Positions 10,152 through 41,849 of a DNA stretch of 50,979 nt are shown here, in pieces (position 1 is the stretch's first letter; each line of letters begins with the position of its first letter). The notes under the pieces are model-generated. The model was not told the DNA's origin and searched no databases. It saw nothing but the letters and a program-made list of their open reading frames with translations. Both the position numbers and the translations under genes were made by a program. The stretch is from Macrostomum lignano (taxonomy: Eukaryota), in assembly GCA_002269645.1 (NCBI GenBank), contig NIVC01002832.1, positions 1 through 50,979 on the forward strand, written 5' to 3'.

Positions 10152-10514
10152 GGGGGGCCATAGCCCAGCGGTCTAGCGCAGGCTCTGGTGTGCCAGCGAC
10201 CCAGGCTCGATTCCAAGTGCAGTCACATTAATTTGGGGCTGAATTGGAATCTCGGCTTGGCTCTGCTCGTGCAATTAACGGCCTTGAGAGCCAACCCCCC
10301 CCCAGGCGCAGTGAAGTGTACATGCCTAACGATAATATAAAGTTAGGGCCGCGCTGTGCACTCCTGTGTGAGTGTGTGCCTGCGTACGTATCCGCGCGCT
10401 TGTATGCCTGCTCAGGGGAGTCGGCGGAATGGGAAGTAATGCCTCTCGCCGGTTGTGTGCCTATGTCGCTTAAAGTGCGCCAGGGTGCACACAACCCCCC
10501 TGCCTCTAATAAAA
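10152..10514 (+). mobile_element. Second tRNA-derived SINE family, full length with 13-bp TSD
   Basis: A-box TAGCCCAGCGG and B-box GGCTCGATTCC, short A tail. TSD aaggcagtggtta at 10139-10151 and 10515-10527. Related copy at 28455-28773. Confidence 0.85.
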
Positions 10515-10559
10515 AAGGCAGTGGTTAAAAGCTGCGTTTTTGGTACTGCGCATCTGCTT

Positions 10560-16813: not shown

Positions 16814-17607
16814 GCTCCCCAGCTGATGGACGCCGCCCGATTCTGCCGCAGGCTGGAAAATTAATTATAAGCGTTATTTAGCAAGTAGCTTTGATTTCCT
16901 TTCAAAAAAGGCCAACCAAAATAAACTGTTTAAGCATTAAGAGTCTGTATAACTCGAATGAGGATCTGCAAGATGGCGAATTGAATAGAGCTTTTAAGCC
17001 TTGCTATAAAAAATAAAAATACTAGTTAATGTTTTTTTAAAGACATACAAACACAAGAAACGCTATATACGTAACCAAAAGGTGGTAAAATCAAACGTAT
17101 ATTTTTGTTTAATACGCAAATCAGCGCCACTAGAGAAGTACAGGAACAAACGGTCACAAAGATAAGCGGACCCTATTGCATAGCATTGCGCTGCTTTAAT
17201 ATATAAACTATCAGCTCAAATTTGCATAATAAAATGCTTTAAAACACAGAAAAAATCAACCAATACCAGAGCAGTCAGATGCAAAGTAGATTCGTTGGCG
17301 AATTGCCGTTAGAAGAGAGCTTCATAAAGTGCTTATTTAGTTGTGTGCCAAATATTCCAGTGAAAGATAAAAAATCGTGTAGGGGATGATTTTGTTTTGC
17401 AATAGATATAAGCTTCATCGAAAAAAACTAGTGGATATATGTATATAAAAATATGATTTATTTTGAAAATGATTACATTCTGCATAGTGTGTTACCTTTA
17501 ATAATTTTATTATTTAAACTGATTTTTCACCCATAAACAAGTGATGTTTACGAAGAATAAAAACGAAAAAATGCAACTAAACAATCCAATTGGAAGCTTT
17601 AAACCAG

Positions 17608-18735
17608 TCAAGGCAAGTGGCACCAATCGATGGTCGATTTTCCAACCGACTTCAAATAGTCGTTGGCTTCCTTAAAGTACATTTTGCCAAAGAAGCCGCC
17701 CCGATTAACGGCCAGAGGCGACGGATGAGCGCCGCAAATGACCTTGTGCTTGCGCTTATCAATTTTGGCGCCCTTTTTCTGGGCATAGTTGCCCCACAGT
17801 ATGAATACTAGGCCTGCGCAGCGAGAGTTGAGCGTAGCGACCACGGCGTCAGTGAACGTCTCCCAGCCGCGGCCCTGATGCGAATTCGCCTCACCGCGGC
17901 GAACAGTGAGCACAGCGTTGAGCAGTAGCACACCTTGCTCAGCCCAGCCAGTCAGATCGCCATGTCCTGGATGCTGAAACTTGTCCGGAAAATTGTTCGA
18001 CACCTCTTTGTAAATGTTGAGCAGGCTGGGAGGCGGCACGGTCGGCCGGCGGACCGAGAAGCAGAGCCCGTGGGCCTGGTTAGGGCCGTGATAGGGGTCC
18101 TGGCCCAGGATGACCACCTTCACCTCCTGCAGGCGGCAGGCGCGAGTCCAGGAGAAGACCTCCCCAGGCGGAGGGTAGATTGTCTTGCTGGAGCGCTCGG
18201 CCCGAACAAATTCAGCCAGCTGGACAAAGTAAGTCTTAGTGAGCTCAGGCTTCAGGGCCTGCATCCAGCTGATACCGAAGTCAACCACCAGCGACTGAAC
18301 AGCGGCTGGCTGGGCGCTCAGAAACTGGCTCTGGTTCTCCTTTCCGAAGCTGGACGGCGAAGCCAGAAACGCGTTGAGATTCTGCTGCGGCCGCGGCGGT
18401 GTCTCAGTTGATAGGCAGGGACGCTTCGGCTCGGAATTTTTCATCTCCCCGGAGCAGTCTTTGTCCTCGTCTTTGTCGGCGCTCAAAGGTCGCTTATCCA
18501 TGGACTTGCGGCTTTCCTGCTGATTCTGTAGCCAATTGGACCTTGACTCAACTTTTTCATCCTTTCTTTCTTGATCGGGCGTCGAAGTTTGGTCAGCGTC
18601 CTGCTTGGACGAGGAAGATTTCTCGCCATCTTTTGGCATTGTTTTAAAGAACTTAGAAATTTGAGTCTGAGCCATTGCCTGTCTAGTCTGTCTGCTAGTG
18701 CGCTGGATGGCGAAGTGCGCGATTTGAGCTAGCAT
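17608..18735 (-). CDS. UNG: Uracil-DNA glycosylase, copy 2
   Basis: Same motifs as copy 1. Two amino-acid differences (QSLM/VVDF, NSRS/CAG). Confidence 0.97.
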   Translation of the reverse strand: MLAQIAHFAIQRTSRQTRQAMAQTQISKFFKTMPKDGEKSSSSKQDADQTSTPDQERKDEKVESRSNWLQNQQESRKSMDKRPLSADKDEDKDCSGEMKNSEPKRPCLSTETPPRPQQNLNAFLASPSSFGKENQSQFLSAQPAAVQSLVVDFGISWMQALKPELTKTYFVQLAEFVRAERSSKTIYPPPGEVFSWTRACRLQEVKVVILGQDPYHGPNQAHGLCFSVRRPTVPPPSLLNIYKEVSNNFPDKFQHPGHGDLTGWAEQGVLLLNAVLTVRRGEANSHQGRGWETFTDAVVATLNSRCAGLVFILWGNYAQKKGAKIDKRKHKVICGAHPSPLAVNRGGFFGKMYFKEANDYLKSVGKSTIDWCHLP

Positions 18736-20922
18736 GAATGCGAGAGGATATTCATAATGCTTAGTACACGAATCATTACGCTAAATTACTCACACTAATG
18801 ACTTAAAATACGACGAAAGCCTTCACTGGCCATTCTCCGCCAATGGGCTCCCTAAAAGGGGATAAATAAGGATTTTTGGGGCTTAGCCTTAAGTCTATGC
18901 CCAAAACTAAGCGTGACTCAACGTTTTATGGCCTAGAAGTAAAATTCTCTATGCCTGAAATTCTAGGTTAGGGTGTTTGCCACGACGCTTGTGTTTCAGA
19001 GTCGGAAATCTGTATGGTCTATGGCCCAACCCAATTTTTATATGCTATCGGGCGCTTTTATTCATTTCCAATTCTAGTCGTATATGTCTATCAGCTGTGT
19101 TTCACAGTCGGAAATTTGCGTAGTCTAAGGTCCAACCTGTCTTTAATCTGTATGCTTTCAACTGGGCCACAATACTTGCTTTGAAATTCTCTACTTGATT
19201 GTCATTTAACCAGAGAGAACAGCTTTAAACAGCTGGCTTGGCTTGCTGTCTGTGGGAGAGAGCAGCTTGGAATTGCGAGCTGTCCACTTGATTGGCTGTA
19301 CTGTCTATGGCCGAGTGTGCTGTTTCATGGCATTTACTTGATCGGCCTTATTATCAACTTGACTAACGAAATCAATACAGCTTTTTGCAGCCCATTTGGG
19401 CTTACTCGCATTGAATTTAATCCAAGATACGTTTGCATAAAACCCAATCATTAGTTACAGCTGCGCAAAGCAATTTATTCACAGTACCAACACAAGGTGA
19501 CGTAAAAGTTAAATCTGCTAAAATATAACAAAAAAAGCATTTTTAGTATGGTCAAAACTCCGCAGAAGTCTTTGTTCTCTGTTTGACAGTCTAGCATATG
19601 GTCCACGATTCTGGAGCTGATCTTGCTCCGCCGCAGCAGTTGCAAATGAAGCATTGCTCTCATCTTCACTGCTTGTGACAGTCATGTCTAAATGAACATC
19701 TAGGGTTAAAACTACAGAGCGGATAGGCCCAAATGGGCCGCAAAAGGCTATGCTATAATCTAAACTATGAAATCTATTAAAAATGAAAACGAAAAATGTG
19801 CAGTTGTCATCAAGGTTATATTTGTCAAAACGATGACGGATATATAAATAATCAAAAAAGGTGAGGGAAAATACCATCAAGTTTTAAAAAAAACGGACTA
19901 GGATTACATTCTGGTACGAACAGTGCAATACGATAAAGATCGAACAGTGGGTCAAGATGGACTTTGTTCACAGATAAATGTTTAGGAATGCACATATTTA
20001 CATAACGTATGAGGAAAGTAGAGTATAAGACTGTAAAAAAGTTTTTGCTATTTTCGTCCACTACATATGGTTAAGCAGGGTAAAGTATACATAAGTAAAG
20101 TATAACATAATCAAGTCAACTGAAGACAATGATATTCATTCAAACACAAACAGAAATTGAAGTGTCAGAGAGGCTTGCTTGAAAAAGTCTACTATAGAAA
20201 CACACAGCAACACACAAAGTTAATGCTTGCCAAACAAGTACTTGAAAAATTCACTAAAATGAAAAAAAATAAACAGAGAACTGACCTAATTAGGCTATTA
20301 CGGTGTAAATTTATTGATAACAGGAGGATGTGCAAGTCAGCTAAAAGGAAATAATTTTCATTACCTGGCCACTCTATTAGCATAATAGAAGTATCAATAT
20401 AATGTAGAAATCATTGCAACGTTAAGAACACAATTTGCGTTCAATGCAGGGTAAAATACTGTTAGTTCATCAGCAGCAAACTAAAATATTCAGAACAATT
20501 ATTACACATAAGTATTATAACTAACAATGCAAACATCGGTGAAGAAGATAAATATATTTGTTGTGCGAATTGATATCGAATTGAAATTTGATTGTTGGCT
20601 AGCGATAAATAAATATGCGAAAATACATCTGATATGCACACAGAGATGAGCTCAGCAACAGTTAAAATGACATGCATCTCTGAAAATAAATAAATAAATA
20701 GATTAGCAATATGCCTAATTCGCTGCATGGTTGCTATGCTATCACAGCTGGGTGAAATAGAGCTCATTAGAAGCTCATTAGAATCTGCTTAAATTAGAAG
20801 CCCAACTCAAAAAGAAAGATTAAAATAAATCAATACCAAGACAATACACCGAATGTCAATGTGTACAACAAACGATTGAGGTAATCATAAGTAGCAAAAA
20901 CCAAGTAGACAGAAGCGCCCAG

Positions 20923-21068
20923 TCACAACCGGCTATCCTCTCTGGAGCCCGAGGCCCCGGTCGATTCGTACAGCTCGAAATTGTCGTCCTCGTCTGGATC
21001 GTCCTCGTTGGCCGAGATTGTGACAACTGCTGTTGTCCGAGCGTTGCTGATGACCGAGTGCGGACCAG
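20923..21068 (-). CDS. Candidate terminal exon Z, possibly the Shal/Kv4 C-terminus
   Basis: As for Z'. TTAVVTI loosely recalls the TTAIISI segment of vertebrate Kv4 C-termini (weak similarity). Confidence 0.5.
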
Positions 21069-21212
21069 CTAACGGGAGTTATATAATGATTGATATCAAC
21101 CAGAGCGAGTTAATCACTTGGGGACTTACAGCCTTAGCCACAGATTTCATATTACCCAGATGTGTCCCTCCAGCATTCGCTAATGTATTTAGTGGCAGTC
21201 TAGGAGGCTCCA

Positions 21213-21515
21213 GGGGGTTGTAGCCTAGTGTTTAGAGCGTCGTACTCACGACTTAAAGGGGGGTTCGATTTCAGATCCCACTGGAACAATTTGTGTCCTT
21301 GAGCAAGACACTTAACTCTGCATTGTTTCAGTTCAACCAGCTGTAAAATGGGTGCCAGCATTAGCTGGGGTAATTGAGGGTGTGCGTGGCGACCCCCAGT
21401 TCTTGGATTGAACAGCCGTAAGCAGCCTTCAGATGCGACGCGCAATAGCTGCGGCTGAGCTGTCGGTTGCACATCTGCCCATTGGGACAGGTGTAATCAA
21501 TTATTATTATTATTA
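21213..21515 (+). mobile_element. CORE-SINE, duplicated copy of 5583-5885
   Basis: Same TSD taggaggctcca at 21201-21212 and 21516-21527. The tail has one more TTA unit. Confidence 0.9.
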
Positions 21516-21868
21516 TAGGAGGCTCCAAAAACTCCAGGGGGTTAGGGCCACAGACACTAGCTGCCGCTGCTAATGCTACAGTCTATGGTCTAATGCGGCT
21601 GGAGTGGCCCATCTAGGGGGCATATAGAATCTGTGATATTAGCTAAAGATAGGCCATGAAAACTTTAAGCTGCTGGCCATAGACCCACAGCCTTAACAGT
21701 CTATGGTAAAATAGCACAGTGGCGCATTAAAATTCTAGCTATAGTTTATGGTCAGCCCAGCAGGAGCGGAGTTTTTTTATTTCTAGCTCCGGCGTAGAGA
21801 GTAAACCCTATCGAAGTCTAGTACATTAAGTAGTACATGCAGTTTTCTTTAATTCAAAGCGAACAAAC

Positions 21869-21932
21869 CTTGGTATCTGGAGTTAGGTCTCCTGTTGAGC
21901 TCTTCGCCTTCCTCTGCGCGGCCCCGGCCGGG
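21869..21932 (-). CDS. Candidate 64-nt exon Y
   Basis: As for Y'. Confidence 0.55.
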
Positions 21933-22329
21933 CTGCAATGGAAAGAGATTGACAGCAACAATTGGAAACTTTGTGAACACAATAATAAATATAAGTTAGT
22001 TACGCACGCTATTTAATAGTTACTTAAGGCCTGATGCTACACATGGTTAGTAGAACCTTATCAGTATATTAGTAATTTTACTTAGTTAATTAAAGAAAAC
22101 GAGTTCGGAAAAAAATGAAGTGCTCACTTATGCATAGAAATAGCGTAGAATAAAGAATAAAGAGAATGACTCGAACAGTTAAGAAAGACAACAGATTACA
22201 GAACTTGGGGTTTGAATACGAAAATTTGCAGAAAAATGAGAATATCGCATCACTTCTCACCCGGAACCGGCGAAGCTGCGTAAGAGTTATAATGCAATAA
22301 TAATTATGCATAATAATAGTTCGAATATA

Positions 22330-24562
22330 ACTGGCATGAGGCTGAGCACAATAACAGCTCCATCATATTCCATAGCGAGCACTCTGACTGGCATGGGCTG
22401 AGCACAATAACAGCTCCATCATATTCCATAGCGAGCACTCTGACTGGCATGAGGCTGAGCACAATAACAGCTCCATCATATTCCATAGCGAGCACTCTGA
22501 CTGGCATGGGCTGAGCACAATAACAGCTCCATCATATTCCATAGCGAGCACTCTGACTGGCATGAGGCTGAGCACAATAACAGCTCCATCATATTCCATA
22601 GCGAGCACTCTGACTGGCATGAGGCTGAGCACAATAACAGCTCCATCATATTCCATAGCGAGCACTCTGACTGGCATGAGGCTGAGCACAATAACAGCTC
22701 CATCATATTCCATAGCGAGCACTCTGACTGGCATGAGGCTGAGCACAATAACAGCTCCATCATATTCCATAGCGAGCACTCTGACTGGCATGAGGCTGAG
22801 CACAATAACAGCTCCATCATATTCCATAGCGAGCACTCTGACTGGCATGGGCTGAGCACAATAACAGCTCCATCATATTCCATAGCGAGCACTCTGACTG
22901 GCATGAGGCTGAGCACAATAACAGCTCCATCATATTCCATAGCGAGCACTCTGACTGGCATGAGGCTGAGCACAATAACAGCTCCATCATATTCCATAGC
23001 GAGCACTCTGACTGGCATGAGGCTGAGCACAATAACAGCTCCATCATATTCCATAGCGAGCACTCTGACTGGCATGGGCTGAGCACAATAACAGCTCCAT
23101 CATATTCCATAGCGAGCACTCTGACTGGCATGAGGCTGAGCACAATAACAGCTCCATCATATTCCATAGCGAGCACTCTGACTGGCATGAGGCTGAGCAC
23201 AATAACAGCTCCATCATATTCCATAGCGAGCACTCTGACTGGCATGGGCTGAGCACAATAACAGCTCCATCATATTCCATAGCGAGCACTCTGACTGGCA
23301 TGAGGCTGAGCACAATAACAGCTCCATCATATTCCATAGCGAGCACTCTGACTGGCATGGGGCTGAGCACAATAACAGCTCCATCATATTCCATAGCGAG
23401 CACTCTGACTGGCATGGGCTGAGCACAATAACAGCTCCATCATATTCCATAGCGAGCACTCTGACTGGCATGGGGCTGAGCACAATAACAGCTCCATCAT
23501 ATTCCATAGCGAGCACTCTGACTGGCATGAGGCTGAGCACAATAACAGCTCCATCATATTCCATAGCGAGCACTCTGACTGGCATGAGGCTGAGCACAAT
23601 AACAGCTCCATCATATTCCATAGCGAGCACTCTGACTGGCATGAGGCTGAGCACAATAACAGCTCCATCATATTCCATAGCGAGCACTCTGACTGGCATG
23701 AGGCTGAGCACAATAACAGCTCCATCATATTCCATAGCGAGCACTCTGACTGGCATGGGCTGAGCACAATAACAGCTCCATCATATTCCATAGCGAGCAC
23801 TCTGACTGGCATGAGGCTGAGCACAATAACAGCTCCATCATATTCCATAGCGAGCACTCTGACTGGCATGAGGCTGAGCACAATAACAGCTCCATCATAT
23901 TCCATAGCGAGCACTCTGACTGGCATGGGCTGAGCACAATAACAGCTCCATCATATTCCATAGCGAGCACTCTGACTGGCATGAGGCTGAGCACAATAAC
24001 AGCTCCATCATATTCCATAGCGAGCACTCTGACTGGCATGGGGCTGAGCACAATAACAGCTCCATCATATTCCATAGCGAGCACTCTGACTGGCATGAGG
24101 CTGAGCACAATAACAGCTCCATCATATTCCATAGCGAGCACTCTGACTGGCATGAGGCTGAGCACAATAACAGCTCCATCATATTCCATAGCGAGCACTC
24201 TGACTGGCATGGGCTGAGCACAATAACAGCTCCATCATATTCCATAGCGAGCACTCTGACTGGCATGAGGCTGAGCACAATAACAGCTCCATCATATTCC
24301 ATAGCGAGCACTCTGACTGGCATGAGGCTGAGCACAATAACAGCTCCATCATATTCCATAGCGAGCACTCTGACTGGCATGGGGCTGAGCACAATAACAG
24401 CTCCATCATATTCCATAGCGAGCACTCTGACTGGCATGGGGCTGAGCACAATAACAGCTCCATCATATTCCATAGCGAGCACTCTGACTGGCATGGGGCT
24501 GAGCACAATAACAGCTCCATCATATTCCATAGCGAGCACTCTGACTGGCATGGGGCTGAGCA
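22330..24562 (+). repeat. 57-bp minisatellite array 2, 39 full units plus a partial unit
   Basis: 22330-24543 = 39 x 57 - 9 (nine 56-bp units), then partial actggcatggggctgagca. Confidence 0.98.
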
Positions 24563-25987: not shown

Positions 25988-26150
25988 CTTTTGCGCTTTT
26001 CGCTTGTCCGCCCGCTGATTCTGATGGTAGATGCGGGAAAAATTCGACACAATGACTGGCACGGGCAGGGCGATAACAAGGACGCCGGATAAAGAGCAGA
26101 CACCGCCAACTATTTTGCCGATAATGGTGGACGGCACAATGTCGCCATAG
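25988..26150 (-). CDS. Shal: Shal/Kv4 coding exon 2 (pore YGD to S6 and KRKAQK), 163 nt
   Basis: [54 protein letters not shown]. Acceptor ttgcAG, donor AAG|GTACGT. Phase matches exon 1 (TLG/YGD). Confidence 0.97.
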
Positions 26151-28454
26151 CTGCAAGTTTGTAGTGAAAAACGGGGGGCAAAGTCAGATTATTATCGGAG
26201 ATAGGGAACATAGATCAGATCGCATGGCCCGTAGCATTCAGTCCTGACATTATTAGCATAAAATCACGGCAGCCGCCACTGGGGATTGCGGACGGGAAAA
26301 GGGAATAAAATGAAATACAAAAATAAAAAGACAAGAGCACCGAGTCAAAAGGAAATATTAAAATAAGACTAGAGACGGCGGCAATCCCAAAGGAACGCGA
26401 GATACATACATGGTTCGTGTATAATGCACCGAGAGGGCAGAAGAAAATTCATTTTTTCAAGCGGCAAACAAGAGGCCAGCCGGTAGCTAGAAGGGAGGCA
26501 AGGCAAACAGGACGAAAAGTAGAAAGCGAGACGAATGGCGACACACCGCAATGTCCCATGAGGAGATGCTCGCGAAATATAATCTGAATGGAGCGCCCAG
26601 GGGCCGCATACCGTAAGAAAAGAGTAAGCATAAATACTACTTATTTAGTATTATTATATAGAGACTGCACGAGTCCATTATCAGCCTTATCTGTTTCAAG
26701 AGCACAAACTTTAGCAGGAACTTGGGAATGATAAGCTTAACACTTAGTACATTTGGCATTGCACTTACAATAATGTCAGTATGTCTAGTGCCTATGCGCT
26801 AAGCAGATCATCTTCAGCAAAACGAATTCTGATGGCTTCAAATCCTATCTATAGTCAGTTATACTGAGTCGCAATGTGTTGTCTAGCAAATGTCTACAAA
26901 GCTTTAAAGCCTTACGAAGCTACGAAGTGATCACTATCCAATTTTACTATGTTGGCTGTCACAGACATGCGTTAGGTTTCATCACTAGCAACCTAGCATA
27001 TGCGCCAGCAGATCTATGCATCTGCAGCAGAGCAGCTGAGAGAGGAAACCAAAGAAATGGTTGATAGGGGGAAGAGAGTGAAAGAAAGCAGACTGTAGAA
27101 GCTTGCAGTAGCCAGGGCCAAGATTGGGGACGCGGGGTGTGCTGTTGTGGGATATCGGATGGCTAGGAGAGGGGGGTGGAACGGCTATCTGAGCTGGGGA
27201 GCCATAGAGACAAACAGCTCGCAGGCAGGGGATAGATGGGAACGGGAATAGAGAGGGATAGAGACCCCACATCCAACTGATTTATCATTTCAAACGCGAG
27301 GCCCTCCAGGCGTTGGAAAGCGCCGAGTGGTAGCAGGCGAGAATAGAAAAAGATAGAGAAGCCTATAGAACTGAGAGAGGGTTGGCAGGGATGAGAAAAA
27401 CAGAGAAAGCCGGGTAGAGTCAGCTAAGTGTGGCCGGCAGCAACGGGAGGGAGAAATAAATAAGAGAGATTAGGGAAGCGTTTGATTCCCGATAAATCGA
27501 TGCGGCGCAAGGCCAGACCCATGCCAGTGTTGGCAGGGTCAATCTAAAAGCAGATTTTCAGCTGCTGAAACACTGTCATGCAATATTCATTTTCGGATGG
27601 ACAGGCGCATTAAAACCCGCACAGACACCGCTGTCTACCAACAGGCACCGGACTCGGTCCATTGTTTTATAAAGACGGCAACATTTGATTCCGTCAGGCT
27701 AACAATAGAAGTTTGCAGAAGCGCTCGTCTGCTTTGGAATGACCGAAGACCAAAAAAACCGACGAGCGTCGAGAGATGGCAAGACCACAGCTGAGCAAAA
27801 AATGGGCGAGAAGAGGACAGCTACAAAATTGGCGACAGCACTAAATCGAATTTGCCGACCGTGCTGAGCCGCCAGTTCGCATCAGCATAGGCACTAAGGC
27901 GAACGCGCCACAAGCACCGTAGTGTCGCATAGAAGCTGTGTCGAATTATTCCTAACCGACAAATTCTCTCACCCCAATCCAGCATCCAAATGTGCGATTC
28001 TACATTTTTTCTCCATCATCGCACGGGCTGAACATATTAAATTTTCTATCATATGTCAAAAGCCTAATGGCGAATGCAAAGCCCTAGACGCAGTGACGAA
28101 AGACCACGAGAGGAGAGATCGAACTAAATATTGCTGCAGTGTCGGCGATGCGGCGCCTCCGTGGAAGTGCAGACATGCAAATTACGGCCTTGTAGACGGC
28201 ACCCAGAGCCAGTCTTACCCGGACTATTAGATTTCGTAGAAAGTGGAGAGCCTGTTCAACAAGATGCCAGCAGGAGACACTTCCTGCAATTCACAGTCCC
28301 ATCTTTGTAGTTGTGAGTCATTTTCGTTAGCGAAATTTTGTGCTGTAAAAGTAGTGTACGGGCTATAACCTATACTTGAAGAGCAAAAACTAAACACTAT
28401 TGAATTATCCGAAGACTCGGATTGTTCGCCAGACCTATGCAACCCTATGCAAGC

Positions 28455-29338: not shown

Positions 29339-29413
29339 TGTGCCAAGAAGAACACGGAAATAGGCCGAAGAAACATAAATATTGTTTTCGATTATTTTAA
29401 AACCTTAGAATGA

Positions 29414-30160
29414 GCGGCTGAAGCCATTGAAGGCCGGTCAAACAACTCTGATTCTACGCAGAAACTGGAGAGATGAATTCAATTGAAGCTGGGCTAGCGG
29501 CTGAAGCCATTGAAGGCCGGTCAAACAACTCTGATTCGACGCAGAAACTGGAGAGATGAATTCAATTGAAGCTGGGCTAGCGGCTGAAGCCATTGAAGGC
29601 CGGTCAAACAACTCTGATTCGACGCAGAAACTGGAGAGATGAATTCAATTGAAGCTGGGCTAGCGGCTGAAGCCATTGAAGGCCGGTCAAACAACTCTGA
29701 TTCTACGCAGAAACTGGAGAGATGAATTCAATTGAAGCTGGGCTAGCGGCTGAAGCCATTGAAGGCCGGTCAAACAACTCTGATTCGACGCAGAAACTGG
29801 AGAGATGAATTCAATTGAAGCTGGGCTAGCGGCTGAAGCCATTGAAGGCCGGTCAAACAACTCTGATTCGACGCAGAAACTGGAGAGATGAATTCAATTG
29901 AAGCTGGGCTAGCGGCTGAAGCCATTGAAGGCCGGTCAAACAACTCTGATTCTACGCAGAAACTGGAGAGATGAATTCAATTGAAGCTGGGCTAGCGGCT
30001 GAAGCCATTGAAGGCCGGTCAAACAACTCTGATTCTACGCAGAAACTGGAGAGATGAATTCAATTGAAGCTGGGCTAGCGGCTGAAGCCATTGAAGGCCG
30101 GTCAAACAACTCTGATTCTACGCAGAAACTGGAGAGATGAATTCAATTGAAGCTGGGCTA
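29414..30160 (+). repeat. 83-bp minisatellite, exactly 9 units, in Shal intron 1
   Basis: Unit starts at 29414, 29497, 29580 and so on; 747 bp = 9 x 83. Confidence 0.97.
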
Positions 30161-31335
30161 ACTGCACCATACTTGACAAGTGCATCATAAAATTCTTCAC
30201 CACACCTATACTAGACAAGAGCAGTATTCCATCATGCATGCGTGTCGGTCAGGGCAGCTGGAAAAATCCTGGACAGACAGGAGGCGTCTTGTAAATAATT
30301 CGCACTGACCAAATCAGACGGTGTGGAGAGGCCAGGCTTAGCCTATTTTACTAGAAGCTCACCTCGCGCCCGCATGTAATGGAAAAATCTAGACCTGGAT
30401 TTCTAGCGGCTGTCAGGCGCCTAAGGTTTGTTTGTTTGTTTGATCAGTAACTATTTCACACCAGTAGAGCAGTGACAAGTGCACAAGCTTTACTATTTAA
30501 TATACATAGTAATATTGAACCTGATTTATCATACTCTTGTGTATGATTTCAAAACTGCACTCGCCGTAAGTTCTGCGCCTGCTCAACCTATCGATTAAAT
30601 TGATGACCAACAAGGTTAATTAATCTGTTTGACACGATAAATAAGTGACCAGGATAAGCAGGGTCGATTAACAAAAGACTCATTGCTTTTACAATGAATA
30701 ATGCAGCTTCAGCTCTAGTCTGCAAGTACACTGAACCAAATTTGTACAAATATAGGGCGGACCAAGCGCTCACTCAGCACCAGGGGAGAGGTCGAGAAAA
30801 GACTGTTTGAACGAGGGCTGGCCTAGAAAAAAAGCACACGAACCCATTAAACTATCCGGCCTTCACTGGCCGCTTGCATCAATTCATTAATCGACTGCGA
30901 GCCAAGATGAATTTGCACGGCACAAATAGCAAATCTATGCCACTGGCGCGAGGGCAGGCTTTAGTCAAGCTCAGTCAGCAGCAGGCTTCTACTAAGCATT
31001 CTTCAGACCCCAAAAAACTGCACCCTATCCCAAAAAGAGGAGCGGAGACCTAGTAAATTATGCATCTATCCACACTGTGTACGAAGTGGTTCCACTTCAA
31101 TAGGTGCTGATAAATTTATTGAGCGCAAAAATTGCAGTAGCAAAGCCAATGCATTAGCAAAATAATGGCTGAAAATTTAGAATAACATTTACGATGGTAG
31201 ACGAAGCTGAAGCTAATAGATTAGAAATGAAAGACAGAAAATAATCCCGTTTGGTACTTCACAAATTGGATATTTAGAACAAGAATTTCGCGATTTTATC
31301 TATTCATATTAAAAACAATTTTAGCACATACTCAC

Positions 31336-32439
31336 CCCAGCGTTGTCATGGTGACTATAGTGTACCAGAAGGCCGCTGGTATTGATACAAAGCCTGTTTT
31401 AGGTTGATTCTTCTCTGCATAATACATCACGGTAGCGAAGATGATGACTGCCATTGTCATGGAGAACAATAGAAAACCAAGTTCAGAAGCGCACGACTTC
31501 AAAGTGTAGCCCAGAATTCGAAGTCCCATGGAGTGCCTGGAAAACTTGAAGATGCGAAACACTCGAAAAACCCTTAGCGTGACGAAAGCTCCGCTCAGGT
31601 CCTTATTATCCGGCATGAACAGTCCGATATAATAAGGCAGGATAGCCACGATATCGATGACGCTCATCACTGCGCGCAGATGCTTCAGCCGCTGGGGGCC
31701 GCGTACAGCCTGGCCAGGTATTCCACAGTGAAGATGAGCACGCAGGCCGTGTCCAAGCAGAAGAATGCCACTGAGAAGCGGTCTCCGCATGCCGGACTCA
31801 AATTAGTGCCGGGCTCAACTCCGCACGGGATGGTCTCAAACACGTTAGCGAGAACGGATACGGCAATGAAGAAGCCCGTCACGTAGTAAACAACCAATGC
31901 TACCGTCGAAGACTGGGGATTCTCGAACGCGCGCCAGAGCTTCTCCCTAGGCGTGCTGTGCGGCATGGCGTTCTCGGCATCGGAGTCCTTGTCGTCAAAC
32001 AGGCGCTCGTTATTCTCCCGCTTGCGATCCCTGTAGTCCTCGTAGCAACAGTCGCCCATGATGTCCGGCATGATGCCGAAGAAGGCCAGCTCCTCATCGT
32101 AGGCCATGATGCACTCATTCTTGGATAGTGCAGCCTGCCGGTGCGGTAGTAGGCCAGGATGTGGCGGAACAGGTCCGGGTCTCGGTCGAAGAAGTACTGC
32201 TTGCTGTCCTCATCGTAGAAGTACTCCTTCTCATCGCTGCCGAGCAGAGTGTCCGGAAACTTCTCCAGCGTGTTGCGCCAAGTGACAAACTTGCGCCCGG
32301 AGACGCTGATGACCAGCTTCTCGTCCGATTTGTGATCCTCATCTCGCAGCGGGGGCGGCGGCATCGGGCCCTGGGCCACCGGCACCCAGCCTATGGCCGC
32401 CGCCCTGGCAAAGGGAAGCCACGCAGCCACGGCGGCCAT
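31336..32439 (-). CDS. Shal: Shal/Kv4 potassium channel exon 1 (N-terminus, T1, S1-S5, pore), with two apparent 1-bp frameshifts
   Basis: [22 protein letters not shown] (KChIP-binding N-terminus), [40 protein letters not shown] then GTGAG. Frame changes near 32123 and 31692. Confidence 0.96.
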
Positions 32440-32941
32440 ATTTCATTTAACACGCTGCTTTGAAGATTATCAAACTGTTAACTATCAAAAGGTAACCTTG
32501 ACGCAATGTGTGTATCTGGGCGGCGGCAGCGCTGAGGACTACGGGTGACGAGGCCCAGCAGGACAACAGAAGGTCCGCAGTCCGACCGTGCCAGTCGGCG
32601 TTTACCAATGACCGTTGCCGCCCGCTGAAATGATTGGTTAAAATCATTCCTAATATAGTATATACTTCAATATTCGCGCCATACTACCAATAGAAACTAT
32701 ATAATATAATTACCGTCAGAAAACAAATCCAAGAAAAGAATGCCAATTTTACACCGAGCGAGTTCAATTTAATGCTTGAACCAGACTGCCAAAGCGCGGA
32801 ATACACGCACCGTTTTTATCCCCATTCTTTATACTTTCTTCCCAACCCCCCTCAGCTAACCAACAACTCATCTCCCTTCTCTGGCACTTCTCTTGCTATG
32901 CGGGCGTCACAGACTAAGAAAGGCAAGGACAGAGAGGAATA

Positions 32942-33184
32942 AGGAAAGCAGGCAGAGGTTGGTGAGGGGATAGAAATGCAACGAGCGAGAGCGACGAGGA
33001 TGGAGCTGCAGAAGGCCACGCAGAAGGGATGGGACTGGGAGGGGGAAGAGGGTGGATAGAAGTGGAAAATGGGTAGAGTTGGGACAACACTGGCAATGCT
33101 ACTGTCGTCGAATAAGAAATTTTCCTATTGCTGTCCATCTTGCGCTTTTATATGAAATCTTTATTGACACTACAGTTTTTGCAT
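32942..33184 (-). repeat. ~240-bp purine/pyrimidine-skewed dispersed repeat, inverted partner at 41337-41577
   Basis: Near-identical reverse complement; the ORF track gives the same peptide MDSNRKISYSTT... from both. Confidence 0.9.
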
Positions 33185-33343
33185 ATGCGCATTACATTAC
33201 TGTAAAAGTGAGTAATATAAGAAAAAGTATTAACGCATTTCTTGTTTTTTCAGCGAAAAACCTGAAATAAACATTATTAAACGAAACCACCATTTGGACC
33301 TCGGATATTTACTCTCCTATGGGCCGTTAAGTAACCGAAAACA

Positions 33344-34739
33344 CCGGGTGGCGCATAAGTAACCGAAAAAGTTTAAACTTAATAACTATCGCATACATAG
33401 AGGCACGTTAATGAAACTAACAGCCTTGAAAGTTCTCAAGTTGGCAATAATCATACTGGCTAAATCGAGTTCTAAATTTGAGCGCTAATTTTTTGAGTTC
33501 TAAATCTGACATTTCGCTCATGTCAGAACAGGCGCTTGACGAAATGGCTTGTAAAAGCAGCCTGAAGTAAAGTATCTTCGATTTTTTATCGCGTCTTCGT
33601 ACGAAAGTACCCACAGCCCCGTTGTTGTGCAACGAAAATTCTGAGCCCAGTTTGTACTGAATGCCAAACTACCTACAAGATCCACTATTCTGGCTATTTA
33701 CAGCAAAGTTGTGGAAACAGGGAACCTTAATGACAAACAGTGAAGCGGATGGTCTGTGTCTACGAGAACAACGGATGCGGTCGCTGCAGTGCTGACTGCC
33801 TACGATGATAACCAAACAGTGTCAACACGCCATGCGTCTGTGGAAATCGGAATGTCACGGAGATCTGTTTAAAGAATCCTTCATGGAGAAGGCCTTCACC
33901 CCTAAAAACTACAAATGCTGCAGGAAATCAGCAAGATTGCATTGATCGCCTATGGTTTTGCGAAAAGATGCTGCAGGCCATTCGTGAGGATGAAATTCTT
34001 CTGTCACACGTCATCTGGATTGATGAGGCGCATTTTTATCTCAGCGGAGAAGTTAACAGGCACAACTGCAGATACTGGTCGTAGGATAATCCCTATCATA
34101 CAATGAGTAGCCCCATGCATTTCGCGAAGACCACAGCGGCGGCATCATCGGCCCATTCTTTGACAAGACTGTCACTGGCCAGTCTTACCTAGCAATGCTC
34201 AAGGAACAACTGCTTCCGATGCTACAGAGAATGCCCCAGTTCAGAGCTAGTCGACTTTGTTTCATGCAAGATGGTGCCCCGCCACACTGGGCTTCTGGTA
34301 TGCGCGACTGGCTGAAAAACATCTTTGGCAAGCAGTGTATTGACCGAGGAGGACCCATGCGCTGGCCTGCTCGAAGCACTGATCTCACACCATGTGACTT
34401 CTACTGGTGGGGTGATCTGAAACGACGAGTATAAGTTCGCCAGATGGTCTCCATTCAGGAGCCAAAGCAGCAGGTTGTCTCTGCTATCGGTACTGCACCA
34501 CACCTTCAGACTGCTGTTACAAGCCATTTCGTTCGTCAAGTGCCTGGAGTTCTGCAGTGAGCGAAATGGTGCTCATATTGAGAACTCGATTTAGTCTGGT
34601 TATTGACAACTTAGAAAACTTTTATACTGCAAAAAGTTCTTACTATGTGTTCTTTAAGACTGTTGAGTTTCGTTAAGATGGCTCTATATATGTGATAGTT
34701 TTTTATTTTTAGTTTTTTACTTACTTATGTGCTATCTGG
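33344..34739 (+). mobile_element. Degenerate rosa-type (DD41D) Tc1/mariner transposon with ~110-bp imperfect TIRs
   Basis: Broken frames VQRKF*, WIDEAHF, QDGAPPH...RSTDLTPCD (41 residues between the 2nd and 3rd Asp). Left end CCGGGTGGCGCATAAGTAA; right end ttacttatgtgctatctgg followed by TA. Confidence 0.88.
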
Positions 34740-37319
34740 TAAGATTTGCTGCGCAATATTGTATCATAGGTGCCTGGGTTTTTTGCTTTGGCCCAGTTGA
34801 CAGACTACCATTGTTTGACTGAATTTTTAGCTCCCCCTCTAGCTAGGTGCCCTAGAAAGGTACCAGCTGGCGTTGTTGAGACTTGCATAAGCAGAAGGTA
34901 TTTGTGGATTGGCAAGAATGAATAGCTCATTTTAAGCTTGAAAATATTCCTTTTTAACAATAAAAATAATTATTAATATTTAATAATTGTTTCACATTGG
35001 TACAAAACCAAGTTCCAACCACAGATGCTAGAATAACTAGATGGGACACTTAGCACATTTGCATTTAAAATACTCTCAGTTCAGTAGTAAGTTAAGCATA
35101 ATCATTACAATGCATTTTTAGGCCAATGCTCATTTATTGGCTCTTAATCCCCCTAGCTTAAACACTCCAACTGTGCCTTTCCACAATACCTCCACATCTT
35201 AATTTTTATTGCCTTCTTGGAATTCTAATCTAAAGCTATTATGCACATTTTATTGGACTGGCTAATGTACATTATTGCTGAATCAATTAGCTAGTTGTTT
35301 AAATGCCTACAAGCTTAGGCTTCTAAACTTATCAAAGTAGTTTCAGCTGTCTTTTTTCTTATAAAATAGCTTATGCATTCTTTTTTTGCTACTAAACTGA
35401 AAGTATAAAGCTGTTTTACTAAGTATACTATATATGCCTGATTGGCTAATCTATTTGTAGTCCAAACTAACTACTAAATATTAAATATTGGATATAAATG
35501 CTTAGAAACAGCTGAAATATAGCAACAACTGAAAGCTACAATATGCAATATAGTGTCAGAGCATATTGTATGTGTGCACCTTAATATATCATTACTTAGA
35601 ATATGAAATATATCATTTATTAAATTGTAAAATTAATCTTAAACAATGCCTAGCATTATAAATGCAATGCAAATACAAATAAGTACAATACAAAAAGTAG
35701 GCATTTTAAAATGTTCTAAACATCTTATATATGCTTCATGCTGAGTATTAAAAGCATTAATCATTAAGAAAAATTCTTCTAATAGGATAACGTGCATTGT
35801 TATTTATTAGAAAAATATACAGATTTCATAATTGAATAGTCTAAAATTTTATTGGCCAAAACTCATTTATAACCATTGGCATTTTTGCAAACAAAAAATT
35901 AAAACAAAATTAGACAGCATATTAAATAATTTTCACCTATCTAGACAAGTCTCAAAACTGAATTGCATTTTCAGTCAAAACTAAATTAGTAATTTCTACA
36001 TTTCAAAGGTTGAATTTATAGTATAGTCAAATAAATACTCAACTTGAGCCCAAATGAGTCAATCAAATAACTGAAGTTTTTTTATTTGACTGGAGTAAAC
36101 TTTTTGGACTAAAAATTCTTGTCAATTAGCTTTTTGAATACTTATATAATATGCATATAAAACTGAAAAAGTCTCAAGTTTAAAGAAAGAAACAATCTAT
36201 GTACTTAGAAGCTTAGAACTTTGAATTTTTTTTATAGTTTGTATCTATTAACTTATATTATTTGTTAAGCATTATAAAAACAATGACAGAGACAAAACTA
36301 TGAAAACATGCATGCAGTATAAAGTATGAGCTATGAAATTAATTATTTAAAAATAATCACAATTCTTATATATTGATTAAAAAACTTGATATTGAACTTT
36401 ACTCAAACTACTCAACTTATCAAAAACTCAACCAAGTAGTCAACTTATCCAACATGTAAGCTTGGTTAGACTCTAATATATAGTATGGACTATTTGAATA
36501 AATAGGCTACTTTATTTGAATAATAATAACTAAATATCTAAAGTTTAAAATGCTATTTAAAAGACTAATAGCTAAAATCCCTATTAGAATAAATGTTGAA
36601 AACCTGCGGATGCACACTTTAAAACAGTCAAATTATTTTACTATGCTTTAGCATTATTAGAGATATTCCAAAATAGCACTTTCTGTTGAAATTGAAATTT
36701 CTTCCAAAATCAAGTCCATTAACTTTGGACATTAACTGCCAAAATCTAAATTCAGAAAAACAAAGTTAAATATGACCAACACTCACTTTTTACTTTTGAT
36801 TTACTGCTTATGCAAAACAAAATACATGTATATGCAGTAGAGATTGGTTTTTTAGCCACTTTTGGAAAATTGAAATTGAAATTTTATAATATCTCTAAAG
36901 CATTATAAATTATGAGTGTATAGGCCCTTCCACAGAGGTATTAGGCCCCCTTCCATGTATATTTATTTGCTAGAGTAGCAGCCAACAGAAAATAGCAGCA
37001 CACACATAAGCACCTGGGCATGCACTATGCTTTAGAAAAATTTCAAAAGTGTGCCAGCTGCCATTCACAATTTTACAACTTTTTCCTATAGGGACCAAAA
37101 TGACTATAAAAATAAGGGCTCAACTAGTTTGCTAGAGAAAAAAGAGATAGAACTCTTATTGCTAGAATTCTATTCAATCAAATCTATCAGCTAAATCTCA
37201 TGACCTAAATCCTATCTTCTAAATCATTTCCAAATCTTCTATAAAACTTCCCAAATAGCAAATACAATATCTTATTTGCCCTATTTGCAAAATTTTCATT
37301 GCCATGCTCCATAACAAAC

Positions 37320-38100
37320 TGAGACTCTCTTGTCTCCTCTTTGCTTTTCTATCTCTGCTTTTTTCCTTTGTTATCTCGTTTCTCCTTTTTCTTCTTTCCT
37401 CTACTCTTTATCTTTTCTCATCTCACTCCTTTCTGCTTTCTCATAACTGCTTTTTACTCTTTACTTAACTGATCTTTTTACTCTCCTCTGTCCTCTTTTC
37501 TCTTTTACCACTACTCTTTCATCTCTCTCTTTTTTCATTTTCCTCTTTTTTCCTTCTCTCTTGTCTCTTTCCACACTCTCTTATCTTTTATCTTTACTCT
37601 CTTATCTATCATCTCTATTCTTTTCTCTATCATCTCTATTCTTTTCTTTATCCTCTCTTATCTCTATTTTCGTCTCTCCTTATTTTTCTCTTTCCTTTTA
37701 ATTTCTCATTTCTTCTCTTGTCTTTATCTCTTTAATACAAATTAGAATAAATTTATCTATGTTAAATGTTAAGATTTGAGACAAGCATTGATCTGATTAG
37801 TTTACCATGCAGAATATTAGGAAATGTTTTTTTAAAGCATAAGATTGGCAAACTTTGGCTTCTGGCTCTGCCTTTCTCTATGTCCCTTAGGTCTTTCAAG
37901 ACTAATTTGCTCTCTCCTTATTCTTCCTATTCCTATTCTCTTTTTTCTCTCACCCTCTCTTTTCTCTAATCTCTAATCTCTTATCTTTCCTTTTTTCTCT
38001 ATTGTCTCTGGTCTTTTATCTTTTTGTCTACTTTTTTCTCTCCAATTTTTTTCTTTTTTTCTTCTTTGAAATCTACTTTCTTCTATCATCCTATATACTA
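37320..38100 (+). repeat. CT-rich low-complexity tract
   Basis: Long pyrimidine-dominated stretch (ctct/tttc). Confidence 0.85.
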
Positions 38101-39584
38101 AAAATTTTTCTTCTAGATTTAAGTTTGGCTAGATTCCTTTGAATGTTCCAATTTTTTGGTATATGGGCATACCCTGGGTATATACCATAGTCTTGAATAT
38201 GCATAGTACATACAAGATTTTTTGCCTTGCATAGTATATGAGGTTTGGATCGAATCTACTAAGACCAAGGAATATTACAACAATTGCTCTAGCAGTAGTG
38301 TATTATGGGATTTCTTGAGTTTTTTCTATTCTAAAGTAGGCATGTGCACTTTAAAATTTTTAATTAAACCTTGAAATTGAAGAAGTGGATTAGTGATAGA
38401 TCCAAATATTTAGATTTGAATCCAAATCCAAAAAGTCTCACTTTTTTTAGAAGTCTAAATGTTTCAGATTTCTTAAATTATATTTTCCAAATTTCCAATT
38501 GTGCTTCCGAATATGAAAAAATCAAAAAACCAAAACAACATTATGCTAATGTAAAAGAAATATAACTTTAAAAAAGAAAGTCAATTAAAAAACAAGAATG
38601 CAAAATTTTATGTAATATTGTTTGTTTTGACAATTGTCTATTTTTTCAATAACTTATTATTAAAAAGTGTTAATAAGTAAAATTACTTAACTTTGGGACC
38701 TTTGAAGCATTTTCAACTTAAAGTTGCAGAAACTTACTCTAGATCATGTAATACATGCCTAAAAATTTAAGCATGCATTGGACTTGGATGTCAAAAATAG
38801 GCATGCACAATTGGTATATATCACTCCTAAAAATGTCTGTGCACACCTAATATATACTTTATAAAATCATGCAAGAGAGTTATTGTAAAGTACAAAAAAT
38901 ATTTAAAAGTTCATTTTAACTATAAATTTCAAGCCTTCTGGTTTTTTTAAAGCTTGTAATAAAGCATTTAAAGTAATAAAGCATATAAAAAGGTCATTTA
39001 TTGACATTGTCACAATATCAGTATAGCTTTAAGAATAGGTATGCACTTAATTTTTTTGGCATGCATTTGAAGTTATTCAACTTCTGTTTAGGCTTAGCTG
39101 CAGGGTGGTCCGTAGACACAGCGGGGAGGCGAGGGTCGCCCATTCCGCTAAATCTGTTTAGGCATATATATGCACCTAGCATAATCCAGACTATGGCCTA
39201 AGCCTTAAAATTACACTTTTAAATTAGGCATACGTAAGGTAAAATTTGGCAAATTGTCTCTGGCATAAAGATGAAACCTAGATAAGCATATTAAACATTA
39301 GGCCCCTATTTTTAGGCTTTTGTAGTAATGCCAATAGGCCTATGCCTTAATTGCCATTTTTGACTTAAAAATTGGCTTAAACCAAAGTGGACAAGGGCCT
39401 ATATGGTCTATCTTTAGGCCTACTTTGATAATATACCCTAGGCCTAGGACAGGAGGCATAGGCTTAGTCAAACTTTTTTTAATTAGTAGTTAGGGGGCCT
39501 GCCTAGCATTAGATTTCAGATCATTTTTTAGATCAAATGGCAAAATGATTCAAGAATTTGATAAAGTTTATCAACTATATAGAC

Positions 39585-40250
39585 ACCATAGTCAGGAAGG
39601 TGGCAGAGTGTGCGCCGGAACAAATTTTGGCCTCTCCCAAAATTGTGCGCCGTGCGCCGACACAAAAACCCTCGTGTGCGCCGTTGTGCGCCCGCCACTA
39701 CCTGCCTTGCGACAATAAAAGACCTTTTTTTACAACATAGCAACAATTTTTGTGCGCCAATATACGGGACGGTTACGGGCTATCTATATTATATTATGAG
39801 AAATTGAGATCGTTAAACCGAAAATAGAAATTTAAAAAATTTTTAATTTAATTTCTAATTTTTAAAACAAAACAAACATAAAAAGTAAGCAAATGGCAAA
39901 AACAAAGGTAAAAAGGAAAAGGAAAATATTTTATTTTATTTTTTATTTTTTGGTAGAATGCAGTGTTACATTAGATAGAACAGTGAATAGTGTACTGTAA
40001 CAAGTAACGACTTACATCGTTACATGGGATCGCCACAAGGGTAACGCTGCATGTGGCGCGGCGCCCGCCGCGCCGCGCCGCCATGCGCCGGTGTCCTCTG
40101 GTGTGCGCCGTTGTGCGCCGCTGTGCGCCAGTGCGCCGCTGTGCGCTGTTGTGGCGCGCCGCTGTGCGCCGTTGTGCGCCGTTGTGTGCCCAAAAAGGGC
40201 TTGTGTGCGCCGGAATTTTCCGACCAAACTGCTACCTTCCTGACTATGGT
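39585..40250. mobile_element. 666-bp non-autonomous TIR element (MITE-like) with 22-bp TIRs and 6-bp TSD
   Basis: accatagtcaggaaggtggcag / ctgctaccttcctgactatggt (1 mismatch). atagac at 39579-39584 and 40251-40256. Confidence 0.8.
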
Positions 40251-41336
40251 ATAGACATAGGCCTAGGCCTAGTGAGTAGTGATTAATTAGGGAGTCTAAT
40301 CATAGGGCCTAAGTTCAGGGGCATAGGCATAGGAAGGGGGATAGGGGGGTGTATCCCCCATAGGAAATTCCTGGCTATGCCCCTGTCTAGGTTCTATAGG
40401 CTACTTTCACATTCCTAATTCCAGAACCAGAATCAGTTCGGATCTTACAAGAAAAAAGCAGTATAACTAGGGCCTATTCAACTTTGTTGAACGTTTGACT
40501 GCTTTAAGAGCCTCACAATTTGCACAATTTTCGACTTTCTTCTTGGCTATTGCCATTCTGGCATTCAATAATTACAACTTTATAGCACGTAGGCCCTATA
40601 TCCCTCTAGTTTAGGAGACAAAAGTTACTTTACAAATTGGATCTGGTTCTAGAACCAGAACAAGCAATAAGAAAATGTGGTGTACGAATAATGTAGTAAT
40701 AGTAGAAAGTTTGGCTCAAGCAAGAAGCCTGTTTGGCCAATATATTTCAGTGCATTTAAAAATAATTCAAGAGTAGAAGGCAATATTTATAACGCAGCAA
40801 GTACGACAGGCACTGCAGCAGCAGGTTAAAATACTTTTAAACTATAAACGTTTTAAACAAAAATTCGACTACTTATTAAGGAAAAGTTATATAATTCTAA
40901 CTTTCATTCCTAAAATCGTCTTTCTGCTTAAATTATACATTCTGGCAGTTATGCATGCGTGTAGGCTTATGCGTCCTCATATCTGATCGTCCCAGACAAG
41001 ACCGAAAATTCGAAACCGATTTTTGAGCTTCCAATTTTAACAGGGTCCCTCCGGCCAAAATTCCTGTCCAGAGGAAATTTTTATATGCCAAACAATTCCA
41101 GCAGGTAACTTAAGGGCCTGTCAACTTAAGATCATAAAGCTGAGCCCGAAAAAGTTAAAACCTATCTATCTACATAAATCATTATTACGTGTCATTCTGC
41201 TCACGTGACACCAGAAAGCTGGATTTGGCAAAAAAATACAAAATTGGACCTGGGATAGGAGAGAACAAGCAAAGGGGACAATTTGGTACGTCACCTTATG
41301 AGCTTAAGTTTACATAAGATCGAGTAAGATTGGCGA

Positions 41337-41577
41337 TGCAAAAACTGTAGTGTCAATAAAGACTTCATTAAAAGCGCAAGATGGACAGCAATAGGAAAAT
41401 TTCTTATTCGACGACAGTAGCATTGCCAGTGTTGTCCCAACTCTACCCATTTTCCACTTCTATCCATCCTCTTCCCCCTCCCAGTCCCATCCCTTCTGCG
41501 TGGCCTTCTGCAGCTCCATCCTCGTCGCTCTCGCTCGTTGCATTTCTATCCCCTCACCAACCTCTCTCCCTGCTTTC
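41337..41577 (+). repeat. Inverted partner of 32942-33184
   Basis: See partner. Confidence 0.9.
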
Positions 41578-41849
41578 TTTTTTCAATGGCTGTTGAAACT
41601 TTCCATGTCAATTTTCAGCCTCTTGACAAGAATGTGCGACGCAGTGGCCGAACGAGTGATACAACCCCAGACCTTGTACCGTGTAATTGACTGAGTGTGA
41701 CAGACGAGTCGCAATTCTTTTCCAGTTTCGACTTTGCTAATCTGCCTCCGCGAGTGCTTGCAGAGTGATGAAGCCCCATCCCATACGATGGTGACAAGTA
41801 ATTTGGAAGGTTTCTTTCTGGCTGCCTGGAGCTGGACGATGTGAACGGG

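Follow-up and report, generated by a model that had tools for sequence, protein, structure and literature searches.

What kind of process can remove nearly every CpG dinucleotide from several kilobases of a genome in which other DNA of similar base composition keeps them? The question is raised by an AT-rich block upstream of a Shal/Kv4 potassium-channel gene in the free-living flatworm Macrostomum lignano, on contig NIVC01002832.1 of assembly GCA_002269645.1; the window analysed here is the complete contig of 50,979 bp. Between positions 34880 and 39100, where the GC fraction is 0.286, there are 6 CpG dinucleotides against 83.1 expected, an observed/expected ratio (o/e) of 0.07. An initial annotation, made from the letters alone, read the block as the mark of long-term methylation on repeats and raised the possibility of a process resembling the repeat-induced point mutation (RIP) of fungi. 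The loss is specific to CpG, regional and long-standing, as that annotation had supposed, and its pattern suggests that 5-methylcytosine (5mC), maintained over long periods in the germ line and confined to domains of this kind, was probably lost to deamination.

CpG content, extent and composition of the block

Expected CpG numbers were computed from base composition. The six dinucleotides in 34880-39100 lie at 35791, 36607, 37377, 37671, 38251 and 38508, and the left part of the core holds others at 34671, 34752 and 34871. When the expectation for 34880-39100 is computed bin by bin (200 bp) and added up, so that a strand-skewed CT-rich tract is taken into account, it falls to 77.3, and 2000 within-bin shuffles give 77.8 +/- 7.4 CpG with a minimum of 49. 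Even if the expectation is scaled to the o/e of 0.7 seen in other AT-rich spacers, the Poisson probability of 6 or fewer is 1.2e-16. Of all CpG-free gaps in the window, the five longest (920, 816, 770, 603 and 580 bp) fall inside the block, and the longest one outside the CpG-poor tract is 246 bp. The window as a whole has a CpG o/e of 0.79, and its control spacers have 0.77 (4001-5000, GC 0.33) and 0.94 (11300-12400, GC 0.36). The depletion is a solid observation: the earlier manual estimate of about 6 CpGs where about 80 were expected agrees with the exact count and with expectations of 77-83, and equally AT-rich spacers do keep their CpG, as had been noted. The extent needs revision, since the tract is larger than the 4.3 kb first proposed; it covers about 34595-39100 plus 39151-39574 and 40261-40440. 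The parts of the domain, with the features found inside its core, are as follows (strand is given where one applies).

34595..39100: core CpG-depleted AT-rich block, GC 0.29, CpG o/e 0.09; non-coding, essentially single-copy
37300..38100, plus strand: pyrimidine-rich low-complexity tract, 78% C+T, GC skew -0.52, with degenerate 21-28-bp CT-rich repeats
37766-37969: open reading frame (ORF) of 67 aa
38371-38565: ORF of 64 aa
39101..39150: CpG-rich islet within the depleted domain, 5 CpG in 36 bp
39151..39574: depleted domain, continued; 1 CpG vs 12.9 expected, o/e 0.08
39575..40260: insertion resembling a miniature inverted-repeat transposable element (MITE), bounded by 32-nt terminal inverted repeats and containing a GC-rich tandem array of 10-bp units; CpG-rich, within the depleted domain
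40261..40440: last CpG-poor remnant; 1 CpG vs 10.3 expected, o/e 0.10

Overall the depleted stretch is 4.5-5.8 kb long, and beyond 40440 CpG o/e is back to 0.72.

The deficit is specific to CpG, as expected of a methylation-driven depleted domain. The symmetrised CpG o/e is 0.09 in the block against 0.68-0.94 in the other AT-rich spacers of the window, but the remaining dinucleotides give a profile equal to that of those spacers: GpC o/e is 1.6-1.9 in the block and 1.5-1.65 in the controls, TpA o/e is 0.84-0.88 and 0.72-0.85, and the combined TpG and CpA o/e is 1.08-1.19 and 1.16-1.26. TG and CA had been called abundant; they are not, relative to the controls, in excess.

In coding content the block has little to offer. 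There is indeed a long gap without any ORF of 60 aa or more, although it spans about 2.8 kb (34960-37766) and not 3.2 kb, and an ORF-poor stretch is unremarkable at 28% GC. Rfam gives no match in the block. The CT-rich tract sits mid-block, and outside it the sequence is complex and non-repetitive. The proposal that certain motifs are deaminated actcgactcgag repeats finds no support.

Comparison of copies inside and outside depleted domains

Evidence that CpGs were lost in place, and lost regionally, comes from repeats with one copy inside the domain and another outside it. Two such pairs are available, one from a transposon at the left edge of the block and one from an old repeat fragment within it.

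33343..34740, plus strand: degenerate Tc1/mariner-like transposon with transposase remnant '...FMQDGAPPHW...WPARSTDLTPCDFYWWG'
35057..35453: old repeat fragment, a diverged copy of an element at 12884-13786 of locus L004

Short-seed repeat finding first placed the mariner at 33460-34594; the revised limits, 33343-34740, include terminal inverted repeats (TIRs) of about 230 bp at 33343-33567 (left) and 34504-34740 (right). The left boundary of the depletion had been placed inside a transposon, and the CpG edge does fall within this element, in its right TIR. CpG o/e is 0.74 in the interior, 1.16 in the left TIR and 0.70 in the right. The outer (left) TIR carries 11 CpGs and the block-side (right) TIR 5; at six sites a CpG of the left TIR is matched by CpA or TpG in the right, and at one site the reverse holds. 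With differences in about 18% of their aligned columns, the TIRs show the mariner to be several-fold older than the 1-4% split between homeologous copies considered below. (An apparent threefold CpG excess among differences in the mariner came down to about four real events once indel alignment artefacts were removed, and it was discarded.)

For comparisons beyond the window, six other M. lignano loci (L001 to L006) were taken from the same assembly via their Shal proteins. The L004 relative of the old fragment is GC-richer and lies in a CpG-normal intron of another Shal paralogue. Over the aligned part it has 4 CpGs where the block has none. From the L004 relative to the block, changes from G or C to A or T outnumber the opposite class by 31 to 10, non-CpG sites included, with no particular preference for CpA. 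Small as these numbers are, homologues outside the domain appear to keep CpG where the domain has TpG or CpA. Repeats inside have thus lost CpG relative to their outside counterparts, and the counter-possibility named in the initial annotation, that relatives would prove equally CpG-poor, did not come true for the TIR pair or the L004 element, nor did any other refuting outcome listed there.

How old the depletion is can be judged from L002 (contig NIVC01002831.1), a homeologous or allelic copy of the locus. Its positions 7714-13023 align with window positions 34725-29413, and its positions 2061-4374 align with 37035-34727, the left 2.3 kb of the block, beside the same mariner and the same gene. 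Block 34727-37035 differs from L002 by 3.8% substitutions. The L002 block copy has 5 CpGs against 44 expected. Between the two copies there are 88 substitutions, and 2 CpGs are shared in 2.3 kb. A context-blind simulation of 88 substitutions predicts about 6 CpGs gained and 0.4 destroyed; 3 copy-specific CpGs are seen. With 2 shared and 3 copy-specific CpGs, depletion must have been complete at the homeolog split, with few CpGs gained since, and the depletion is inherited and saturated. In a paralogous depleted domain, with L006 as outgroup, polarised changes number 13 from G or C to A or T and 10 in the opposite direction, in DNA of about 30% GC; the implied equilibrium GC, by our own arithmetic, is about 0.25, against 0.28-0.31 observed. 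A domain so near mutational equilibrium should be old, and in old, near-equilibrium DNA an o/e of 0.07 needs a sustained CpG-specific rate excess.

The L002 alignment has further features of its own. At window position 34725/34727 there is in L002 an additional 3.3 kb consisting of two tandem arrays without CpG; because of that composition the insertion is uninformative on CpG decay. Homology ends at window position 37035, just before the CT-rich tract. The insertion and the end of homology mark the region as structurally fluid. Divergence between the window and L002 grows in steps the farther one moves from Shal, about 0.3% over 30200-33460, about 1.8% in the mariner (indel artefacts removed) and 3.8% in the block. 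The higher non-CpG divergence in the block suggests relaxed constraint, or a gene-conversion boundary near 33400, and not hypermutation. (L003, a further locus of the set, has a scaffold gap in an 83-bp tandem array and does not contain the block.)

CpG is not generally hypermutable in this genome. In a symmetric per-dinucleotide test, in which each dinucleotide of one copy serves as reference, duplicate copies of CpG-normal DNA show changes at 3.2% of CpGs, within the 2.2-3.8% range of other dinucleotides. Gene bodies (UNG, lipase-like, RRM protein and Shal) have a CpG o/e of 0.7-1.0, and exons 0.9-1.0. Four results, namely the ordinary rate of CpG change in CpG-normal DNA, the TIR pair, the L004 relative and the insertion-like CpG-rich patches described below, argue both against the proposition that all old DNA is depleted and all CpG-bearing DNA young, and against the proposition that the block was always CpG-free.

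The block belongs to a wider compartment. In a non-redundant 126-kb sample scanned in 500-bp windows, 29 of the 69 windows with GC below 0.38 have a CpG o/e below 0.2, few lie in a trough at 0.2-0.5, and the others are spread over 0.5-1.2. CpG o/e is thus bimodal, that is, there are two discrete compartments, and the depleted windows account for 17.5% of the sampled bases but for only 0.95% of the CpGs. AT-rich, CpG-poor DNA lies 1-5 kb upstream of the gene at all of the sampled Shal paralogue loci, which represent three paralogue groups.

L001 5150-8629: block upstream of Shal, with near-copies at L005 5586-8988 and L006 4480-9155
L004 4990-6061 and 6998-8612: blocks upstream of Shal

The paralogous upstream blocks no longer align to one another. 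Inheritance may explain their shared position, as may some connection with the regulation of Shal, or the placement may be coincidental (the base rate is about 17%); we estimate the chance of coincidental placement at a few per cent. Depleted stretches also occur in introns, in downstream regions and beside an unrelated PARP-domain gene (L003 965-2223). Tandem arrays with a CpG-less unit account for some of the CpG-free stretches, but the blocks upstream of Shal consist of complex sequence. Where CpG-rich patches occur within depleted domains, they have the look of later insertions. An islet segment of L001 (7228-7516) is absent from L006, and by analogy the islet at 39101-39150 is probably a young small insertion. 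The MITE-like insertion of the window has partial relatives in L001 and L005.

Candidate causes of the CpG loss

Of the explanations considered, the one we favour is germ-line 5mC restricted to such domains, because a CpG-only deficit, replacement by transitions, restriction to domains and persistence together match the outcome of 5mC deamination, a known process. The block would be old, unconstrained AT-rich intergenic DNA in a discrete compartment where CpG is nearly extinct. DNMT1 and DNMT3 would methylate germ-line CpGs within such domains, and deamination would convert CpG to TpG or CpA far faster than CpG arises anew. The low GC (28%) would be a separate matter, AT-biased mutation having acted for a long time on neutral DNA. 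CpG-bearing patches (the mariner, the MITE and the islet) would be later insertions or lie outside the methylated domain, which would account for the sharp edges. The earlier reading of 5mC on repeats holds up as to regional CpG loss but not as to repeats, the block being essentially single-copy. From the sequence pattern we infer methylation in the block, 5mC as the cause and a process still running.

What is reported of the species is compatible with such a reading. According to reviews, M. lignano retains DNMT1 and DNMT3, unlike planarians and parasitic flatworms (PMC11292947, PMC9246332), and adults have low global 5mC (PMC11292947, PMC9246332, PMC10658182). Low bulk 5mC would be expected if the methylated compartment has already lost at least 90% of its CpGs. 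Wasik et al. 2015 reportedly provide bisulfite data for M. lignano, said to be the only such data for the species.

Several points weigh against domain-restricted methylation. The 126-kb sample is centred on Shal loci, and the comparative counts are small (for the TIR ratio of 6:1 the one-sided binomial p is 0.06). TpG and CpA, the decay products, show no excess in the block, which is compatible only with an old depletion whose products have since equilibrated. The CpG-rich MITE and islet are undepleted inside the domain and must be young or protected. In the depleted domains 7 of 19 CpGs differ between copies, and gains alone could account for this; both cleanly polarised CpG differences are gains by transversion. 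The process may be ongoing or may have stopped very recently. Finally, canonical invertebrate gene-body methylation gives the opposite of the pattern seen here, where AT-rich intergenic DNA is depleted and gene bodies keep CpG; housekeeping-type genes here (UNG and the RRM protein) keep an o/e of 0.7-0.9.

That reversal could mean that M. lignano has an "inverted mosaic" methylome, in which DNMT1 and DNMT3 leave gene bodies and young transposons alone and target short AT-rich domains in intergenic and intronic DNA. We put this forward tentatively, as something less than probable. If true, the domains would amount to about a sixth of the sampled sequence, with more than 90% of their CpGs lost, and the low global 5mC of the species would be explained. 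To our knowledge, such a methylation landscape has not been described for any animal. M. lignano is a flatworm laboratory model, and sequence by itself here predicts where germ-line methylation acted (AT-rich non-genic domains) as well as the cause of low bulk 5mC (domains that hold less than 1% of CpGs). If the methylation prediction fails, an unknown CpG-specific mutational process will be needed.

The alternative that survives best, though we regard it as unlikely, invokes age together with a former genome-wide methylation that has since collapsed, so that CpG-bearing DNA is younger (transposons, duplications) or selected and the block is the only old neutral DNA left here. The absence of the L001 islet from L006, and the terminal repeats of the mariner and the MITE, do make CpG patches look as if inserted later; compositionally the block is close to equilibrium, and the cleanly polarised CpG differences, as said, are gains. 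However, the mariner, with TIRs some 18% apart, keeps an o/e of 0.74-1.16 in its interior and left TIR, exons keep 0.9-1.0, and AT-rich spacers of like composition keep their CpG. Age alone would lead one to expect a continuum of o/e values, and the distribution is bimodal. With 2 shared CpGs in 2.3 kb, moreover, the clock of CpG regain would have started barely before the homeolog split.

Slightly less likely again is a CpG-directed process, or selection, that is independent of methylation (a deaminase, a bias in repair, or avoidance of CpG-binding factors). CpG replacements are mainly transitions to CpA or TpG, as deamination predicts, and the canonical DNMT toolkit is reported in the species. 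The depth of the depletion speaks for such a process, 0.07 being lower than the CpG o/e of vertebrate bulk DNA (usually about 0.2), as do the lack of a TpG/CpA excess and the low global 5mC reported. The last of these is expected anyway, however, if the domains hold less than 1% of CpGs. We know of no such domain-restricted CpG-directed process in animals, which counts further against this explanation.

It is also improbable that the block was never CpG-rich here and owes its composition to a CpG-poor source, for instance an ancient AT-rich family of satellites or transposons, or DNA gained by horizontal transfer. Related loci do contain CpG-less tandem arrays (L001 12718-14574; L002 4961-7569), and the tract at 37300-38100 is of low complexity, but the block outside that tract is complex and non-repetitive and its dinucleotide signature, CpG aside, is that of the host. 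The sole segment with a detectable relative is a CpG-less, AT-shifted version of a CpG-bearing element, and the mariner TIR lost its CpGs in place.

RIP-like mutation, as in fungi, would be marked by TpA/ApT above 0.89, (CpA+TpG)/(ApC+GpT) below about 1.03 and a positive composite index. Only the first of these is seen in the block, at 0.98, and ordinary AT-rich spacers reach as high a TpA/ApT; the second ratio is 1.45, giving a composite index of 0.98 - 1.45 = -0.47. The changes relative to the L004 element do include a general shift from GC to AT at non-CpG sites too (31 against 10), the kind of change that had raised the idea of RIP, but the C-to-T changes show no CpA preference beyond the abundance of CpA and are better described as general drift from GC to AT, as expected of DNA close to mutational equilibrium. 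The block is unduplicated in the window and in the 126-kb sample, its homeolog and one 400-bp fragment aside, and an 8.9-kb duplication elsewhere in the window (1-8918 and 15655-24550), whose copies are 98.3% identical, is unmutated. The RIP suggestion is therefore abandoned as highly improbable.

Foreign, contaminant or mis-assembled DNA, which the sharp compositional change and a PacBio-based assembly with evident homopolymer errors might bring to mind, is refuted by the second, independent contig NIVC01002831.1, where the block, 3.8% diverged and differing in structure, occupies the same position next to the same mariner and the same Shal gene, and further by worm sequence on both flanks in one contig, by the host dinucleotide signature and by analogous blocks at five other loci; for annotation, then, the block is neither contamination nor mis-assembly, and the foreign or mis-joined origin that the initial annotation had named as refuting it did not come true.

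Neighbouring genes and known counterparts

The minus strand of the window carries a duplicated unit of a lipase-like and a UNG gene, an RRM protein gene and the Shal/Kv4 gene. The Shal ATG (32439) and the start of the block upstream of it are 2.1 kb apart, and between them lie a 250-bp repeat and then the degenerate mariner.

31332..32439, minus strand: first coding exon of the Shal/Kv4 potassium-channel gene (Pfam Shal-type, BTB_2 and Ion_trans), collinear with the L002 gene model
32937..33184: 250-bp repeat, left copy, 97% identical to its inverted partner
41336..41584: 250-bp repeat, right inverted copy

The two inverted repeats lie 8.2 kb from each other on either side of the mariner, the CpG-free domain and the MITE, and may delimit a large composite element; target-site duplications were looked for around both (32937-33184 and 41336-41584) and none was seen. 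The Shal protein of the window matches an M. lignano UniRef entry at 100% identity. Its first coding exon has two 1-bp deletions in C-homopolymer runs relative to L002, at 32125 and 31699, and these break the frame of a gene that in L002 encodes Shal in full (659 aa). Both have the appearance of PacBio consensus errors and not of a pseudogene, and they probably explain the missing Shal annotation in this contig. At 26042-26156 (minus strand), an exon of the Shal pore/S6 region matches the Rfam family K_chan_RES with 68 bits (gathering score 51). K_chan_RES is a potassium-channel RNA-editing signal described for Kv1.1/Shaker-type channels, and the match could be a real editing hairpin or merely conserved coding sequence. 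An intron of Shal contains an 83-bp tandem array (9 copies at 29413-30160 in the window; L002 12276-14268; L003 4375-6770), with many more copies in L002 and L003 than in the window and with the scaffold gap of L003 inside it; its copy number varies between homeologs, and the array is a likely cause of mis-scaffolding.

The 8.9-kb tandem duplication, whose copies lie 15.6 kb apart, contains an intronless lipase-like gene, an intronless gene for a 375-aa uracil-DNA glycosylase (UNG) and a tandem array (57 bp x 39) with several of its frames open. One UNG protein of the window clusters with PAA54960.1 (BOX15_Mlig020078g11), and the closest relatives outside Macrostomum are 41-64% identical. At 12467-14890 (minus strand) an 807-aa ORF with a C-terminal RRM domain and internal 111-bp (37-aa) tandem repeats at 13665-14556 is nucleolin-like in layout.

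Among known systems, the fungal isochores produced by RIP share with the block its AT-richness, the absence of genes, sharp borders by transposon remnants and a high TpA/ApT, but RIP targets CpA, whereas the deficit here is one of CpG, the block is not a repeat and the host is an animal. Vertebrate CpG islands in methylated DNA offer a parallel to the CpG-dense patches (39101-39150 and the MITE at 39575-40260) amid CpG-free DNA. Unlike those conserved, protected promoters, the patches here look like young insertions, since the L001 islet, the one checked, is an insertion/deletion difference between gene copies. The closest resemblance is to the mosaic genomes of invertebrates (Ciona, sea urchin, oyster) and to vertebrate non-island DNA, which have in common with the block a CpG-only deficit with other dinucleotides normal, a bimodal CpG o/e, replacement by TpG and CpA, and the presence, as reported for M. 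lignano, of DNMT1 and DNMT3. The differences are that canonical invertebrate mosaics have depleted bodies of broadly expressed genes where M. lignano has depleted short (1-5 kb) AT-rich intergenic and intronic DNA, that the depletion, at 0.07-0.09, is deeper than the vertebrate average, and that methylation is here a prediction from the sequence pattern. It would appear, on balance, that the block behaves as the methylated and CpG-poor part of a mosaic animal genome does, differing from that part in which compartment is affected and in how deep the depletion runs.

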